Assembly (NCBI GenBank): GCA_964035545.1
Contig: OZ037767.1
Coordinates: forward strand, 30,396,628-30,460,627
Source: Bugula neritina
Taxonomy: Eukaryota > Animalia > Bryozoa
DNA length: 64,000 nt
Direction of reading: 5' to 3'
Of the stretch, positions 26,916-64,000 are shown in pieces. How positions within the stretch are numbered: position 1 is the first letter of the stretch; each line of letters starts with the position of its first letter. Below the pieces are notes generated by a model. It saw only the letters and a program-made list of their open reading frames with translations. It was not told the DNA's origin and searched no databases. The position numbers and the translations under genes are program-made.

Positions 26916-27238
26916 ACTTTGGTTTCTAAACACTGGGTATCACACCATGACCATTGAACAGAGCACCAGCCAACTGGTGTCTAATTTTGGCTGTCACAGT
27001 CTTAAGTGCTCAGCAACTTCACCTGGTTGCACAACCTGTTGGCAGTTGACACAGGTGTCTGTATAACTTTTATTTATGTAACTCTAATCTATGTAAAAGT
27101 TGTAAATCTCTGCCAAGAATGGCGCAACACTCAGTAAACTGAGCAGCAGCAGTATAAAAGGCAGCGGCTGAGAGCTGGTTCTTCATTCTGTTTGCTGATT
27201 AGCATTGAACACTCAAAGCTAGCAGCAGTTGTCTCACC
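26916..27238 (+). promoter_or_regulatory. Promoter and 5'UTR of vitellogenin-like copy A (TATA box, Inr-like motif, E-box cluster)
   Basis: TATAAAA at 27153-27159; TCATTC at 27183, 30 bp downstream; E-boxes at 26971, 27020, 27043 and 27052; block conserved upstream of copies B and C. Confidence 0.8.
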
Positions 27239-30200
27239 ATGAAGTTACTCGTACTCACTGCCCTTGTGGCTACATGTAAGTGTACAACTATTCTTTATTA
27301 TTCTTTTATTGTTGAATAATTTTGAGTGCAACTTTTAAAAGATCAGAAAAAATAATTAAAGGGTCACTATTTGTTTATAAAAGCACTATATTTATTTATA
27401 TGTTTCAGTAGATATCTATAGCAAATTATATTGTGTTCAATTATTATTTATTGCATTTGATATTAAATAAAGTTAGATTCTGAATATATAACCTGAATAC
27501 CTAAACTATAAAAGAGTACAGCTAGTTGTTTAGTATAACTATTTATATTCCATTATTTTATATGCATTAAATGATGAGTATAGAATATTTTTCATATAAT
27601 GTAGAATGGAGCAACTCCAAATAATTGTTGTTTAAACACAGGTGCCTGCTGGCCAACATGGGGAACAACTAGCTACAGACCTGCCATCCAATATCAAACT
27701 ACTCACACCAGTAAGTGTAACATTAATCAGTGCTATTTAATTCAATTCATCCTTCTTCACTACAGAAATTCTGCAGTACTAACATAAAGCAAAGTCATTG
27801 CTTATTTTTTTTATAAAATTCATTATCTATACCTACAGAATATGAACCCGGAACCGTCTACGAATACCAATATGAATCTCAAGTAATGACTGGACTTCCA
27901 ACCTTCAGCAAACAATATGCCGGAATCAAGATCAGATGTGACCTGACTCTCACTGTTGGCAGTGCTGATTGGATGACCTTGAAGGTAGTATTTTATGAAA
28001 CTAATGTTTTGTTGTTGCATTATTCTTTTTACTAGTTAGTAATAAAATGTAATGATCATAATCAAAATTCGTTACGTAGATGAATGTTATAATCATATCA
28101 ACCAATTACTAAATTAATAACTGTAGATGAAGAATGTAAGAGTGTACTCATTGAATAATGAGATACAAGAAAGCTACAATCTTCCTCCAACAATGCAACT
28201 TCCTCTCGACAAGTTTGAAGAGTTGCCATCAGATCACAGCAGACTCATCCAAGGAAAACTTCTCCTTCCACTTGAGTTTGAGTGAGTACTCAGTTCATGC
28301 AGGGAGATGTTAAAAAACTAAACATTCATATAGCCTGAATGGTGGCAACACATTATCAATTTCTGTTTCAGATACAAAGACAACAAGGTGGTGAGCATGA
28401 AGGTTGCCGACGAGGAAACCAACTGGTCTATTGACATCAAGAGAGTTGTTCTCTCCATGTTCCAAGTACGACTTCAGTCAAAGACTCCCAGCGTTGATAG
28501 ATTGCTCCAATACAGCGATCTGCCCAGCCAAAACACCACCACTTTCGATGATTTGGAGGCTGGACTGGAAGGATCTTGTTACAGCACCTTCCACACCTAC
28601 GTTGATGAGAAGGACGAGGCCAACACATACAGAGTAAGCTATTAAATAACTTTATAGTATTTGAATCTCATTGTTTACAACTCTATATATAAAATATTAT
28701 TTTGGAAAACAAGAGACCATTTAGATAATTTTGTTGCTTTTGTTTAGGTTGTCAAATTCAGAGACCAAGCCAAATGCGTCAAGCTGAACGCTCTTGACAA
28801 GAACGCTTTCCAACAGCGTCAGAGTAACTGTGACTGCCGTGGAAACATGAACAACGAGGCTTGTCAATGTGCTCCCATCTCTAGCATTCGAAACTCTACC
28901 GAATTTGTAAGTACGCACATGTTTAAATTTTATGAGTAATACTAGAAAATGAAATGTTCTTTGTATATAGATATATAAAAAACATTATGTTAATAACATA
29001 AATATTATATATAATTACAGGTATTCTCTGTCACCAGATGTGATTATGAACTCTCATCAGAAAATGAGAAAGATCTGGTCATCAAGTCTGCTGTTATGTC
29101 AGTTGAACACAAGATGGAAATGCCAAATGCTCCACATAAGTTCCTCCTCACCACATCAAACCAGACTCTCATAATGACAGGAGAGAAACCCGCCCCTTCC
29201 TCACGTTCACAATCAGTAACCATGAAGACTGTGTCTGAACCATGGAGAATGGAGATTCTGAAGAAAGATGAGGAGAAGCTGATGATGACTGAAGCCGAAC
29301 TCCTTCAACAGGTAACTAATCATACCTATTCCAAATGGTTAAAAGCACAATGTATTTCATTTTACAATAAATAAGCAAAATGTTGTATTTTAATCTCAAA
29401 CAATGCTTGTGAAGGATATAACTTAAATTGGTTTTCTTGTAACTATTAAGCTCTCACCTAAGATTCCTTTTGTTCTATTAAAAGCATACAAGAGACTACT
29501 TGGTAATCGAAGATGAACTTAAAGCTTTTAAGTTATTGCTAGAGTATAACTATTTCAAACATGAATTGGAATTCTCAATATTGGAATTAAAACATTTAGT
29601 TTACTGGTGTTCAAAGTGAATTCATTTTGTTTTTGCAATATAAAAAATGAATTTTTAATGCATGAAAATGAAATGTGTTTGTAGACTGAGAAACAACTCC
29701 AAGAGATTGAGGCCGTTGCATCTGTACCAGAGAGATTTGAAGATCACGTCCCACTGTTCCTTCAACTTCAGGCTAACGTAAGACTCTGTACTCGACCTCA
29801 GCTGAATACCATCTACTCCAAGCTGCAGAACAAACCAGCCATGCGTAAACAACTGTAAGATATGAATGTTACATCAGTGGAGTACAGTTTTTGTGTATCT
29901 CAGTTTTTAGTACTGTTATAAACATTTGTTTCTCTACTGTTAGGCAAACCTTCCTCGATGTCTTGAAAACTGCCAACACAACTGAAGCTGACAACATGCT
30001 TATTGAAAAGATTGGAAATGGAGAACTTACTACTGGAAATGCCAGCTTTGTGCTTATCCAGTGGGCTGCTGAGAAAGTCCCAACACTTGAAATGCTAGAA
30101 GAATTTAAGGTTAGCAGATGTGTTCTATACAAATCACTCTCTCAATAACTAAACCCATCATGAAATGTTTTATTTTTTAAAGATATAAGTAAACTGCAAC

Positions 30201-48500: not shown

Positions 48501-49084
48501 AGCACTGTCAACAGTGAGAGTCAAGTCACATCTGATCTTGATTCCAGCATATTGTTTGCTGAAGGTTGGAAGTCCAGTCATTACTTGAGATTCATATTGG
48601 TATTCGTAGACGGTTCCGGGTTCATATTCTGTAGGTGGACAAAGAAGTTTGTAGATAACATTAAATATACATTAAAGCTTGCTCTAAGTTGGTATTGCAA
48701 AGTTTCTACATTATAGAAATTAAATTAACTTTTACTATGCAATGCTCGACTTACTGGTGTGAGTAGTTTGATATTGGTTGGCAGGTCTGGAGCCACTTGT
48801 TCCCCATTTTGGCCAGCAGGCACCTATATTTAAAACAATATTTCATATTTAGAGATGTTACTTTTTGATTATAGGAAGTAACATTTACTAACCTATTAAA
48901 CTTAAAGCATATAAAATAATAAAATTATACCATAAATCTTTTTGGTGAACTGCTAGCTGGACTGTGATTATCCAAGAATCTTGACTACTTAGCTTAAAAC
49001 AAAATTATTCAATACTTCTAAACAATAAAGAATAGTTGCAAACTTACATGTAGCCACAAGGGCTGTGAGTATGAGTAACTTCAT
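39533..49084 (-). CDS. Vtg: Vitellogenin-like gene, copy B (same exon architecture as A)
   Basis: ATG at 49084 (MKLLILTALVAT), stop TAA at 39533-39535 after ...QDRCSQ. Exon translations align one-to-one with copy A; no stops or frameshifts in the exons inspected. AATAAA (minus strand) at 39343-39348. Confidence 0.9.
42703..43151. mobile_element. 449-bp MITE, PIF/Harbinger (Tourist-like), in intron 17 of Vtg copy B
   Basis: About 50-bp imperfect TIRs GCGTAGGGCTACACGACGCGATTTACT... / ...AGTAAATTGCGTCGTGTGGCCCTACGC; TAA target-site duplication at 42700-42702 and 43152-43154; the homologous site in copy C (catctgctagagTAAcg, ~57721-57737) is empty. Confidence 0.88.
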
Positions 49085-49365
49085 GGTGAGACAGCTGCTG
49101 CTAGCTTTGAGTGTTCAATGCTAATCAGCAAACAAAATGAAGAACCAGCTCTCAGCCACTGCCTTTTATACCAAATGCTGTTCAGTTTACTCAGTATTGT
49201 GCTAATCTTGGCAGAGATTTACAGCTTTTACATACAGTAGAGTTACATAAATATAAGGGATACAGACACCTGTGTCAGCTGCCAACAGGTTGTGCAACCA
49301 GGTGAAGTTGCTGAGTACTTGAGACTGTGACAGCCAAAATTAGACACCTGTTGACTGCTGCTCTC
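49085..49365 (-). promoter_or_regulatory. Promoter and 5'UTR of Vtg copy B
   Basis: TATAAAA (minus strand) at 49164-49170; homologous to the copy A promoter block. Confidence 0.78.
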
Positions 49366-49540
49366 ATACAATATTCTGAGTTTTGAAGCCTAAGTCCATA
49401 AACCAAACACAAATATGATATTTATATACCTCTGTAGAAAAATTAAAGATATTATTGCAATTTATTGCTAGGAGTGGCAATCTTTACGGATCGCCTTTTT
49501 GTATTGTTCTATACTTTGCTGGTTCTAGAATATACTCTGC

Positions 49541-49717
49541 CACACACACACACGCACGCACATGCGCGCGCGCACACACACACACACACACTCACGCACA
49601 CACACCATTATATATATATAATGGTGTATACACACACACACACGCGCGCGCACGCACGCACGCACACACGCGCACACACACACACACAAAAACACACACA
49701 CACACCATTATATATAA

Positions 49718-49796
<79 letters not shown>

Positions 49797-49946
49797 GGTG
49801 TATAGTTTACCACTAAAAAGAGCGCAATGCAGTGCAGAGCAGAGCGAATAAAAGTGTTGTATGATAAAATTCGATTTAAAACACTTTATTACTATTAGTT
49901 TTATGTGCATTATATATACACAATCATAAGATAAAATGTTCACATT

Positions 49947-49995
<49 letters not shown>
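49541..49995. repeat. Compound (CA)n/(CG)n/(TA)n microsatellites
   Basis: Directly visible; explains the spurious HT/YI-repeat ORFs. Confidence 0.95.
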
Positions 49996-50001
<6 letters not shown>

Positions 50002-50045
50002 GTATACGAGAAACATTGTTATTTATTACTTTATTAGGTAAAGTA

Positions 50046-50094
50046 ATTACACTGATATTTCGGGTACCACTGTACCCATCTTCAGAGTAGCAAT
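50046..50094 (-). ncRNA. Minimal type I hammerhead ribozyme (pLTR copy, sense to the element ORF)
   Basis: AUUGCUACU-CUGAAGA-U-GGGUAC-AGUG-GUACCC-GAAA-UAUC/AGUGUAAU: conserved core, 6-bp stem II, helix I pairing. Confidence 0.8.
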
Positions 50095-50349
50095 GAATGA
50101 AATTCAAAAATTATTATGTTATGTTAGACGTTACGCATGACACAAAGAATAGAGAGTGGCAGTTATTGTAAATCATTGAAACTTAAGGGAGATAATCTTA
50201 TTTTATATATTACGCAGGTCAAAAATTATACTGATTTTTTTTGCATAAAAAATAAATTAGAGTTGACAAAAAAAAAAAAAAAAAATAGATATCCAAATAT
50301 AAAAACAGCAAGAATTAGTGAAACTATGTGAGAGTTGAGTAGTGTGGAG

Positions 50350-50598
50350 CTATTGATATAGTTTTAGTGGTATGGAGTAATTTTGTTTATTGAGTTGCGG
50401 TTTTATTTGTTTAATGTAGAGAGCTTCGGCTACTTTTCGATGGTGGATTCCTTTAAATGAATGATTTAAAACTGTTACATTGTCTATTGATATGTTTCCA
50501 TGATTAGTAGTAGAGATGTGTTGATAAATTTTGGAATTGATGTCATGGCAGTGTTCATGTATCCTGTGTGATAGGCGACGTCCGGTTTCGCCTACATA
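50350..50598 (-). pseudogene. GIY-YIG endonuclease C-terminal fragment of a Penelope-like element (82 aa, no start codon)
   Basis: YVGETGRRLSHRIHEHCHDINSKIYQHISTTNHGNISIDNVTVLNHSFKGIHHRKVAEALYIKQIKPQLNKQNYSIPLKLYQ*; matches the YIG.T.R.L..R..EH...H...R...EA..I....P.LN pattern. Confidence 0.87.
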
Positions 50599-50776
50599 TG
50601 TTTGTCAACTCTAATTTATTTTTTATGCAAAAATAATCAGTATAATTTTTGACCTGCGTAATATATAAAATAAGATTATCTCCCTCAAGTTTCAATGATT
50701 TACAATAACTGCCACTCTCTATTCTTTGTGTCATGTGTAACGTCTAACATAACATAATAATTTTTGAATTTCATTC

Positions 50777-50825
50777 ATTGCTACTCTGAAGATGGGTACA
50801 GTGGTACCCGAAATATCAGTGTAAT
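50777..50825 (+). ncRNA. Minimal type I hammerhead ribozyme (inverted pLTR copy)
   Basis: attgctactCTGAAGAtgggtacagtggtacccGAAAtatc/agtgtaat; predicted cleavage after C50817. Confidence 0.8.
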
Positions 50826-50907
50826 TACTTTACCTAATAAAGTAATAAATAACAATGTTTCTCGTATACCTATTTATAATCAAATTGCTAGCTCGTAAAG
50901 ATATATT

Positions 50908-50947
<40 letters not shown>

Positions 50948-51822
50948 ATTCAAAAAAGTAAAGGAACCTTTGTACTACCTTCTACACGCACTACACTTTA
51001 TTTTACAAATTTACTCATGGATATCAGTTAGTCTACTATCTGAATAGAACTGACTAGCTGAACTGTTTGGCATGGACTGCATATTTTAGTAATAATAGCT
51101 ATAGTAGCCCCTAATAGCTATTTGAAATAGCTTTTCCCAATTCATCAATTGACAGAGGTAGCCCAGGCATTCGCAATCCTATTTAAGATAGCTACTGTAA
51201 TCTAAACTCCAATTGTTATTTGAATCCAAATTATTTATATAGATATATCCATTTTAATGTTGCAAAAGTACAAAACTGTCTTGAATTAATATTAGTTTCC
51301 TTGGTTCTGACTCTATACAATGACATGCAAATTGTTTTACTATTGGAGTTTCACAGCCCCTTTAGAATGTATATATAGCTAATGTTATATGATTACATAG
51401 AAAAATATGACCTTTTCTTACAGACCACGTATTGCCATTTCCTGTTTATATCAATTAGGCTGGTCACATTGATACTTTGAGTAGCGTCAAAATTCTAATA
51501 TAACTCTTACAATTTAATTTTCCAACCAATCCTATAGCCATAATCCTATAGTCATAAAAGAAGAACAAAAGTTTTTACGCATGTTTTTAAAAAACTGAGT
51601 CACTTTGAAAATAACGGTGATGGAAGCATCTGTCATAAATTTTATTTCATCAAGTTTTCAAAGATCAATGGTGATTAAAGATATTACCTACACCCATCAA
51701 GTTCTTTTTCTAAGTTAATGATTTTGTATTTTAGTGTAATTTGAGATAAAGTTTTCTTAACTGCTGTTTTTCTACTGCTATTTTAGTGATGCTGCAAAAG
51801 TACACAATTTATAAAAATTTTA

Positions 51823-60300: not shown

Positions 60301-63159
60301 GCATGGCATGTTGATATACAATTTTTCGAGATGGGGCAGTGGTGTAATCTCTAGGCAAGATGGTTTTCTGAAACAGAAGAGTTGCAATTTACTTATATCT
60401 TTAAAATATAAAATATTTCATGATGGGTTTAGTTATTGAGAGAGTGATTTGTATAGAACACATCTGCTAACCTTAAATTCTTCTAGCATTGCAAGTGTTG
60501 GGACTTTCTCAGCAGCCCACTGAATGAGCACAAAGCTGGCATCCTCAGTAGTAAGTTCTCCATTTCCAATTTTCTCAATAAGCATATTGTCAGCTTCAGT
60601 TGTGTTGGCAGTTTTCAAGGCATCGAGGAAGGTTTGCCTAACAGTATAGAAACAAGTGTTTACAACAGTATACTAAGAACTGAGATACACAAAAACTGTA
60701 CTCTACTGATAAAAAATTTATATCTTACAGTTGTTTACGCATGTCTGGTTTGTTCTGCAGCTTAGAGTAGATGGTATTCAGCTGAGGTCGAGTACAGAGT
60801 CGTACGTTAGCCTGAAGTTGAAGGAACAGTGGGACGTGATCTTCAAACCTCTCAGGTACAGAAGCAACGGCCTCAATCTCTTGAAGTTGTTTCTCAGTCT
60901 GTGAAATACAGCCAATGTTTAGGCAATGCAAGCAAAAGAAAACCATTGATTGAGGTTGAATAGCTATCGAACTAACGTTTTCCGACAATTAGTTTTTATT
61001 TGGCTATTATTAAACTTCAAGTTGCAACATAGTATTAGTTCAACCTCGATAGAAAACAAATACATGATACATAAAAACATCCACTTGAAACATTTACATT
61101 TAACACTTTGTACTATTGCTATAAAAACACATAGATTAATTTTATTTCTTATCAGTATAATTTAAAAAACCAATTATGTCTTTCGGATCATTTTAAATCT
61201 GATTGGTTACCTGTTGAAGGAGTTCGGCTTCAGTCATCATCAGCTTCTCCTCATCTTTCTTCAGAATCTCCATTCTCCATGGTTCAGACACAGTCTTCAT
61301 GGTCACTGATCGTGAACGTGAGGAAGGGGCAGGTTTCTGTCCTGTCATTACGAGAGTCTGGTTTGATGTGGTGAAGAGGAACTTATGAGGAGCATTTGGA
61401 GCCTCAATCTTGTGTTCAACTGACATAACAGCAGACTTGATGATCAGATCTTTCTCATTTTCTGATGAGAGTTCATAATCAGTTCTGGTGACGGAGAATA
61501 CCTGTAATTAGAAAATACTTATAGTATTATTATATTTTTATATATATTTATACAAAGAACACTTTAGTTTTCTAGTATTATTTACAAAATTTAAACATAT
61601 GCATAGTAAACTTACAAATTCGGTAGAGTTTCGAATGCTAGAGATGGGATCACATTGGCAAGCCTCGTTGTTCATGTTTCCACGGCAGTCACAGTTACTC
61701 TGACGCTGTTGAAAAGCATTCTTGTCGAGAGCGTTCAGCTTCACACATCTGGCTTGGTCTCTGAATTTGATGACCTTTACAAGAAAAATTGGAAAATAAA
61801 TGATATCGCATACAGTAACAAATTGTAAACATCAAGATTCAAATAAATGTGGACCGTGAACTATAAAGTTATTTAATTATAGCTTACTCTGTATGTGTTG
61901 GCTTCATCCTTCTCATCAACGTAGGTGTGGAAGGTGCTGTAACAAGACCCTTCCAGTCCAGCCTCCAAATCATCGAAAGTGGTGGTGTTTTGGCTGGACA
62001 GATCGCTGTATTGGAGCATGTTATCAACGCTGGGAGTGTTTGACTTAAGTTGAACTTGGAACATGGAGAGAACAACTCTCTTGATGTCAATAGACCAGTT
62101 AGTTTCTCCATCAGCAACCTTCATGTTCACCACCTTGTTCTCTTTGTATCTAAAACAGCAAAATTCAAACTATATTTTCTATTGTCTTTGAGTAACAGAA
62201 AGTCTAGTTAAGATTCTCCGACAGTTGAATTCTCCGACTATGACTTGGAGTCACATCTTACTGTGCTCAATACTCACTCAAACTCAAATGGAAGGAGAAG
62301 TTTTCCTTGGATGAGTCTGCTGTGATCTGATGGCAACTCTTCAAACATGCTGAGAGGAAGTTGCATGGTTGGAGGAAGGTTGTAGCTTTCTTTTATCTCA
62401 TTATTCAATGAGTACACTCTTACATTCTTCATCTACAGTTATTAATTTAGTAATTTATTGATATGATTATCTTCATCCACATAGTGAATTTTCAACAAGT
62501 TGATTGGAGCTAAGCTTGTTGCTTGTCACTAGTAAAAATATAAAAACAACATATTGTTTTACAAAATGTTACCTCCATGGTCATCCAATCAGCACTGCCA
62601 ACAGTGAGAGTTAGGTCACATCTGATCTTGATTCCAGCATATTGTTTGCTGAATGTTGGAAATCCAGTCATTACTTGAGATTCATATTGGTATTCGTAGA
62701 CAGTTCCAGGTTCGTATTCTGTAGGTGGACAAAGAAGTTTATAGATAGCACAAAAGAGACATTGGTGTTTGATTTAACCTAATCTTGTGGAGATGACACA
62801 GTAAAGAAGGTTGAAGTCTTTTACTTACTGGTGTGAGTAGTTTGATATTGGTTGGCAGGTCTGGAGCCACTTGTTCCCCTTGATGGCCAGCAGGCACCTG
62901 TGTTCAAACAGTATTTAGTATTTGAGTTGTTACTTTTATACTATAGAAAGCATCATTTGCTATACTAATCTACTAAAGCATATGAGTATTAATACTATAC
63001 TATAAATCTTTAGATAAACTGCTTGCTGGATTCGTTGATTATTCAGGAATCTTGACTAGTCTTGTAAAAGCAGAATTTAACATTCAATAATAAAAAACAA
63101 TGAAGAATAGTTGTACACTTACATGTAGCCACAAGGGCAGTGAGTACGAGTAACTTCAT
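54374..63159 (-). CDS. Vtg: Vitellogenin-like gene, copy C (same exon architecture as A)
   Basis: ATG at 63159 (MKLLVLTALVAT), stop TAA at 54374-54376. Exon translations align with A and B; no disruptions in the exons inspected. AATAAA (minus strand) at 54173-54178. Confidence 0.9.
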
Positions 63160-63481
63160 GGTGAGACAACTGCTGCTAGCTTTGAGTGTTCAATGCTAAT
63201 CAGCAAACAGAATGAAGAACCAGCTCTCAGTCGCTGCCTTTTATACTGCTGCTGTTCAGTTTATTGAGGTTGCGCCATTCTTGGCAGAGATTTACATCTT
63301 TCACATAGATTAGAGTTACGTAAATATAAGTTATACAGACACCTGTGTCAACTGCCAACAGGTTGTGCAACCAGGTGAAGTTGCTGAGCACTTAAAACTG
63401 TGACAGCCAAAATTAGACACCAGTTGGCTGGTGCTCTGTTCAATGGTCATGGTGTGATACCCAGTGTTTAGAAACCAAAGT
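63160..63481 (-). promoter_or_regulatory. Promoter and 5'UTR of Vtg copy C
   Basis: TATAAAA (minus strand) at 63239-63245; about 320 bp nearly identical to copy A 26916-27238. Confidence 0.8.
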
Positions 63482-64000
63482 CCTTATATCAAACACAAAT
63501 ATAATACGTCTTTTAGTATTTAAATATTTGTGTAGGAATTAAAATTAAAAATATATTCATTTTAATGTTTGAGAAATACAAAAATATTTTAAAAATATTA
63601 GTTTGCCTAGCTCTGAATCTGTATTATATGGTGTGGTAAACTGCTTTACAGTGAGAATTTCACAGTATTCTCAGAATATATATAGCTATTGTAGCATGGT
63701 TATATATAGAAAACTAAAGCCTCTCCTTTCTGCCCATGTGTATTACAATTTCTTGTTTATATCCATCAGGTTGGCTGCATTGATGATCTGAGTAGTGTTA
63801 ACATTATAACACAACTCCCCCAACCATTCCTGTAGCCATAATCCTATAACACTCTATAGCCATAAATGCAGAAGAATTTGTTTATGCTTGTTGTTCAAAA
63901 ACTGAGTCACTTTTAAAATAAAGCTGAATGAAGCAGCTGTTAAAAGTTGCACTTTATTTAAATTTAAATGATCAATGGTGATTGGAAATATTGGCTACAC

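Follow-up and report, generated by a model that had tools for sequence, protein, structure and literature searches.

Canonical EN+ Penelope-like elements (PLEs) of the Penelope/Poseidon type, including PAc of Anolis, encode one open reading frame (ORF) in which a reverse transcriptase (RT) precedes a GIY-YIG domain (Evgen'ev & Arkhipova; PMC8557442; PMC11167929). Their proteins carry DKG and GxKF/Y motifs and two cysteines within the GIY-YIG core, with no cysteine in the RT-EN linker, and their copies show partial-tandem pLTRs, a hammerhead ribozyme (HHR) in the pLTR, inverted 5'-truncated copies and an optional tail at one end. Inverted 5'-truncated copies, a one-sided tail of 30-40 bp and a bias toward microsatellites have been described for PLEs (Craig et al. 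2021, PMC8557442), and a CX2-5CxxC Zn-finger in the linker has been proposed in the literature as the mediator of the (TA)n bias. In vitro, a Poseidon protein both cleaves and extends the two strands of the DNA, and it begins reverse transcription at two adjacent internal sites, the interval between them corresponding to the tail (PMC11167929). The minimal hammerheads (min-HHRs) of metazoan PLEs are of type I and have a CUGANGA...GAAA core, with one nucleotide separating A9 from G10.1 and with G10.1 pairing to C11.1; their helix II is long, and a mere palindrome stands in place of a stable helix III. They are located in the pLTR, and two of them often lie on opposite strands at a distance of 100-700 bp (Cervera & de la Pena 2014, PMC4209133). 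Such min-HHRs cleave weakly in vitro, and only as dimers (PMC4209133). Two other systems come close: Hydra-clade PLEs, which have units of less than 3 kb, a C-terminal GIY-YIG domain, an HHR and (TA)n targets, and animal non-LTR retrozymes, which are non-coding HHR elements from PLE pLTRs with HHR-bearing pLTR-like sequence at (TA)n sites. Here, we compared with these systems a locus in the genome of the bryozoan Bugula neritina, lying in a 64-kb stretch of DNA referred to below as the window.

A (TA)n tract of the window was found to hold a 920-bp insertion (49993-50912). A repeat search identified two inverted arms, 49993-50270 and 50601-50878, of 278 nt each, which are 99% complementary, are separated by a 330-nt spacer and differ at three positions (50135, 50185 and 50237). 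Two incomplete copies of the 3' end of one element make up the insert; they are in opposite orientation, the first of 602 nt and the second of 277 nt followed by a 34-nt tail. The first, or sense, copy was 96% identical to a natural genomic unit over 613 columns (blastn). It extends from the C-terminal portion of the GIY-YIG domain through the 3' UTR to the pLTR end, where, with no tail, it runs directly into (TA)n. The two copies are joined head to head through a 5-nt microhomology, TTTGT (50601-50605), with no TA repeat in between. The interior of the insert is asymmetric, the tail is present at one end only, and no target-site duplication beyond the microsatellite was detected at the insert. 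The coordinates of the features are listed in Table 1.

Table 1. Features of the PLE insert in the window.
Feature	Position	Strand	Basis
(TA)n target microsatellite, left part	49944-49992	.	sequence reading
Sense copy of the PLE, 5'-truncated	49993-50605	-	positions 2151-2752 of the 2752-nt unit; blastn
Minimal type I hammerhead motif, sense copy	50046-50094 (read 50094->50046)	-	descriptor and covariance model; C17 at 50054
GIY-YIG endonuclease remnant, 83 codons	50353-50601	-	translation; stop codon 50350-50352
Inverted partial copy (right arm)	50601-50878	+	unit positions 2476-2752
Minimal type I hammerhead motif, inverted copy	50777-50825	+	descriptor and covariance model; C17 at 50817
PLE tail extension, 34 nt	50879-50912	+	unit positions 1-34, identity 33/34
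(TA)n target microsatellite, right part	50913-50946	.	sequence reading

These results agreed with most of the preliminary description of this DNA, which had reported a 5'-truncated PLE with an inverted pLTR copy, inverted repeats of 278 bp with approximately 99% identity, and their embedding in (TA)n. The repeats indeed differ by only three mismatches, TA runs occur on both flanks, the insert is collinear with copies encoding RT and GIY-YIG and has the tail, and tandem and inverted arrangements of the element occur in the family. The right border, which had been set at 50910, was corrected to 50912, because 50879-50912 is element sequence matching unit positions 1-34. The (CA)n/(TA)n tract just left of the insert also contains two palindromes, at 49604-49626 and 49706-49804, each built as CACCATTATA...(TA)n...TATAATGGTG; they could be products of microsatellite slippage or very short twin stubs derived from another element.

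The family to which the insert belongs was then searched for in the 216-Mb assembly. Approximately 40 other loci matched the first 613 nt of the 886-nt core at 95-99% and then extended into longer coding sequence. A 543-codon frame of one of these loci, used as the query, was found in more than 80 genomic places, with open frames of up to 696-811 codons. A tandem array gave a unit of 2752 nt, and the full-length frame was 775 codons with its AUG inside the pLTR. The preliminary description had looked to full-length RT-GIY-YIG copies elsewhere in the genome, and these were found as RVT_1 frames with a C-terminal GIY-YIG domain. The 32-nt core of the hammerhead motif occurred in at least 371 copies with three or fewer mismatches, at least 100 of them exact, while the reversed control gave none. 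The reading of the insert as a copy from a young, abundant family was upheld.

The arrangement of the copies was examined among 100 exact HHR copies listed. Forty-six of them formed 23 (-,+) head-to-head pairs within 3 kb, with spacings of 46-2212 nt (732 nt for the pair in the window); the same list contained two (+,-) pairs and two same-strand tandem pairs, the latter spaced by 2448 and 2757 nt. The head-to-head twin is thus the commonest state of this family of approximately 370 copies. Among 34 distinct 3' ends of the family, the tail of approximately 34 nt was present in 18 and absent from 16, and (TA)n adjoined 24. In addition, related PLEs on three metagenome contigs (L079, L080 and L104) were observed to have an inverted HHR-bearing copy just upstream of the ORF copy, so the head-to-head form is not peculiar to the Bugula genome.

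We next analyzed the coding remnant. On the minus strand, a frame from 50601 to 50353 reads TYVGETGRRL... to ...KLYQ and ends at a natural stop codon, in a register identical to that of the C-terminus of the long ORFs of the family. It spans the region from the YIG strand to the C-terminus, but the GIY strand and the whole RT are missing; it is therefore a non-functional remnant. The long frames of the family matched Pfam RVT_1 with an E value of approximately 1e-10, and a word-index protein search returned 980 relatives at 37-49% identity, all of which bear an RT; PF28514 and PF26215 were also listed among the Pfam identifiers of the homologs. In an alignment of 44 homologs, D-K-G was invariant and P-G-x-F-Y-G nearly invariant. 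The RT-EN linker of the family is 88 residues long and contains no cysteine.

Profile searches for the GIY-YIG domain itself were largely negative. The Pfam GIY-YIG family did not match the 83-aa peptide, the 135-aa C-terminus or the 734-aa frame, and PDB sequence searches, whether started from the peptide, from the ORF or from a profile of 44 sequences, returned no GIY-YIG proteins and only weak RT matches. PF01541 was matched by three of the 44 aligned homologs (best E value, 9e-6). The positions of the catalytic residues, namely the Tyr of GIY, the Tyr-x-Gly of YIG, and the Arg, His, Glu and Asn, were filled in all 43 of 43 aligned homologs. When the final 135 residues of the family ORF were modelled in AlphaFold2 from a 75-row alignment, the pLDDT was 90.9, compared with 33 for the domain from a single sequence. 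A Foldseek search with the domain model placed GIY-YIG nucleases at the top, UvrC being first with a probability of 1.00. In VIA-align, the model was closest to I-TevI (Z score of 9.7, rmsd of 2.1 over 83 residues), followed by the GIY-YIG domains of EndoII and UvrC (Z scores of 7.1-7.7). On the basis of the three PF01541 matches, the catalytic residues and the predicted structure, we assigned the C-terminal domain of the family to the GIY-YIG nucleases. Of the earlier claims on this region, an uninterrupted frame of 82 aa held as an open frame on the minus strand, although its length is 83 codons; the proposed match of the peptide to GIY-YIG profiles failed in Pfam, and it was the fold search with the full domain that retrieved GIY-YIG proteins.

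Each arm of the insert was further found to contain a hammerhead motif, in opposite strands, exactly as the string given in the preliminary description, letter for letter. In the plus-strand motif, the 5' strand of helix I is AUUGCUACU (50777-50785), followed by CUGAAGA (50786-50792), an extra U (50793), helix II formed by GGGUAC-AGUG-GUACCC with the loop AGUG (50794-50809), GAA (50810-50812), AUAU (50813-50816), the predicted cleavage nucleotide C17 and the 3' strand of helix I, AGUGUAAU (50818-50825). The minus-strand motif lies 261 nt from the stop codon of the ORF. A hammerhead descriptor detected these two sites and no others in the 64-kb window. Compared with the metazoan PLE min-HHRs (PMC4209133), the window motifs have the same type I topology, core, single nucleotide between A9 and G10.1, G10.1-C11.1 pair, pLTR location and opposite-strand pairing, with a helix II of 6 bp and AUAU as the palindrome. 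Their helix I could reach 8 bp if one bulged C is allowed, whereas it is 4-5 bp in the min-HHRs of Schistosoma (PMC4209133). The hammerheads of the Bugula family are near-invariant, like those of D. virilis, rather than highly variable (PMC4209133).

The window motif also has its catalytic core, as well as helices I and II, in common with the Rfam hammerhead families, although their models (Hammerhead_1, RF00163; Hammerhead_3, RF00008; HH9; HH10; type II) gave no match at the gathering score over the whole window. Detection with hammerhead models had been proposed at the outset, and here the Rfam models were silent even at E ≤ 10, both on 1 kb and on a 96-nt slice, presumably owing to the absent helix III and the additional core nucleotide. 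As an independent test of the fit to the min-HHR, we examined 80 related PLE loci from metagenome contigs of other organisms (28-48% protein identity). The strict descriptor gave 34 matches in 28 of the 80 loci and none in reversed or shuffled sequences. When 0-2 extra nucleotides between A9 and 10.1 and any helix III segment were allowed, 40 matches were obtained in the same 80 loci, and the shuffled sequences gave 0-1. All 40 had exactly one extra nucleotide between A9 and 10.1, and all 40 had G at 10.1; helix III was palindromic in 34, and 37 were on the ORF strand, typically 100-300 nt past the ORF. The sequences of helices I and II vary among the relatives yet pair, and the proportion paired was 93%, a figure that is not independent because the descriptor selected for pairing.

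A covariance model (R1) was built from 18 hammerheads of the relatives, with none from the Bugula neritina genome. Applied to the 64-kb window, it returned exactly two matches, at the predicted sites, with 39 bits and an E value of 1.8e-6. The failure of Rfam and Pfam to match is explained by divergence, and the fold search and the relatives-built covariance model outweigh it. These results indicated that the window motifs have all the sequence features of a PLE min-HHR and are candidate ribozymes of this class. Within the family, which is young, 19 substitutions were counted over the 49-nt HHR versus 111 over the 228 nt of the rest of the arm, so conservation of the HHR did not measurably exceed that of its surroundings.

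Nearest-neighbour folding of the monomer favoured a hairpin in which the core is sequestered (-15.3 kcal/mol) over the hammerhead fold (-7.7 kcal/mol). In this hairpin (50782-50821), which is 7.6 kcal/mol more stable, C3-A6 of the core (CUGA) pairs with U16.1-G1.2 (UCAG); the CUGA/UCAG complementarity was absent from the hammerheads of the relatives. Moreover, since the two hammerheads of the insert are on opposite strands, no transcript of the locus would contain two of them in the sense orientation, and a sense dimer, the presumed active form, is impossible from the locus alone. Lacking an RT, a complete nuclease and a sense-strand partner HHR, the copy at this locus is expected neither to move nor to cleave itself efficiently. 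In a full-length tandem copy, the HHR, which belongs to the pLTR, would lie 37 nt upstream of the start of the 775-codon ORF; in the window the corresponding start codon is at 50855, 37 nt after C17 (50817-50857, equivalent to unit positions 2691-2731 in L113). Cleavage after C17 would consequently release a unit-length RNA with a short leader.

Taking these results together, we consider it very probable that the insert is an inert by-product of a single retrotransposition event of a canonical EN+ PLE. Its architecture, with two truncated copies of opposite orientation and a one-sided tail, together with the published signature and biochemistry of PLEs, leads us to read it as one twin event. 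By analogy with Poseidon, the GIY-YIG nuclease would have cut both strands of the TA repeat, and reverse transcription would have begun from each 3'-OH at one of two neighbouring start sites within the PLE RNA; both cDNAs would then have stopped early and been joined at the microhomology. Priming at two different start sites would explain why one end has the tail and the other does not. The order of these steps is inferred from the analogy, whereas the architecture itself is directly observed.

The strong preference of the family for (TA)n and the differences at three of the 278 arm positions would also be compatible with two independent insertions of the same family into one (TA)n tract in opposite orientation. 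Nevertheless, the two copies abut directly through a 5-nt microhomology with no TA repeat between them, (-,+) and (+,-) pairs stand in a ratio of 23:2 among the copies listed, which would not be expected of independent insertions, and a PLE protein cuts and extends both strands in vitro (PMC11167929); we judge this origin quite unlikely. Near-perfect terminal inverted repeats of 278 nt would likewise be characteristic of a fold-back or MITE-type DNA transposon, and an assembly artefact is conceivable given that PLE structures are known to trouble assemblies (PMC8557442). Both the arms and the interior are, however, collinear with the 3' end of a unit that encodes an RT, on which ground the MITE/fold-back identity was rejected, and the asymmetric interior, the tail at one end and the lack of a target-site duplication beyond the microsatellite also disagree with it. 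An artefact is at odds with the three arm mismatches and with the many analogous pairs that have different spacings. A fold-back transposon or an artefact is accordingly very improbable.

The last alternative concerns the neighbouring gene, which is on the minus strand, with a TATAAAAGG box at approximately 49165, an ATG at 49083 and exons matching Vitellogenin_N. The left edge of the insert is approximately 0.82 kb upstream of the TATAAAAGG box, in agreement with the distance of about 0.8 kb from the TATA box given previously for this Vtg copy (copy B), and the sense copy has the same orientation as the Vtg gene. The upstream region of a sister Vtg paralog (62974-63506 and 63551-64000) lacks the 1.8-kb block of microsatellites and PLE (49420-51243); the block is therefore either younger than the duplication or has disappeared from the sister paralog. 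At 63506-63551, the sister paralog has 45 bp of AT-rich sequence in place of the block. Copies of the Vtg promoter and exon 1 were also observed at 26960-27324 and 62974-63506, with 90% and 83% identity to 49000-49420 and one of them inverted, which is in line with a cluster of Vtg paralogs.

In this setting, the inverted-repeat stub might be a regulatory module, in which read-through transcripts or transcripts running outward from the pLTR promoters fold into a 278-bp dsRNA hairpin giving rise to small RNAs; the targets of these would be the PLE family, by silencing, and/or the Vtg paralog at 0.8 kb, by modulation. When either strand of 49993-50912 was folded, 276 of the 278 arm nucleotides paired arm to arm (minimum free energies of -519 and -479 kcal/mol), and this pairing, the proximity to the TATA box and the restriction of the insert to one Vtg paralog would all suit such a module. 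On the other hand, arm-to-arm folding is common to any long inverted repeat, and this shape recurs at unrelated sites in approximately half of the sampled family copies (100 listed); it is therefore a product of how the element inserts and not of selection at the Vtg locus. We therefore regard a regulatory module as unlikely. That transcription of the outward-facing pLTR ends and of the hairpin yields small RNAs or read-out transcripts through which this Vtg copy differs in expression from its sister copies is likewise improbable; separately, the family would be a case of a PLE that targets (TA)n without the linker Zn-finger. Most likely, the insert has no effect on the neighbouring Vtg gene, and the inert twin insertion remains the preferred reading.

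Regarding its place among PLEs, the Bugula family shares with the canonical EN+ elements the single ORF with RT followed by GIY-YIG, the DKG and GxKF/Y motifs, the two core cysteines, the cysteine-free linker, the partial-tandem pLTRs with their HHR, the inverted 5'-truncated copies and an optional tail, here of 34 nt. With RT motifs, GIY-YIG domain, pLTR with inverted copy and tail all found, the family is a canonical EN+ PLE. Judged by motifs only, it would fit the Penelope/Poseidon type rather than Hydra, Neptune, Nematis or Naiad. It resembles Hydra-clade PLEs in having units of less than 3 kb, the C-terminal GIY-YIG domain, the HHR and (TA)n targets; that clade, however, has DKT, no CCHH motif and a CxCX5C linker, and membership was rejected because DKG is present, both core cysteines are kept and the linker is free of cysteine. 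The insert also shares HHR-bearing pLTR-like sequence and a (TA)n site with the animal retrozymes, but its coding fragment is collinear with an autonomous element, which rules out a retrozyme; it is a truncated autonomous copy. Two differences from the systems compared were noted. Unlike the canonical EN+ PLEs compared, the Bugula family has its start codon 37 nt past the HHR cut site, and the family targets (TA)n even though it lacks the linker Zn-finger proposed for that bias.

Every structural feature of the insert has already been described for PLEs, and it is not a new device; this kind of element is well described, with the copy, and perhaps the family, being new. As a single locus it carries little weight beyond being a clean twin PLE insertion with a one-sided tail, and it will be useful for the repeat annotation of the Bugula neritina genome and for the Vtg cluster. 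That the family targets (TA)n while lacking the linker Zn-finger to which the bias has been ascribed is a point that concerns the family as a whole. The start codon 37 nt past the predicted cut would fit a role of HHR processing in making the 5' end of the mRNA. A young family of approximately 370 copies with near-invariant min-HHRs is suited to asking whether such ribozymes cleave in vivo.
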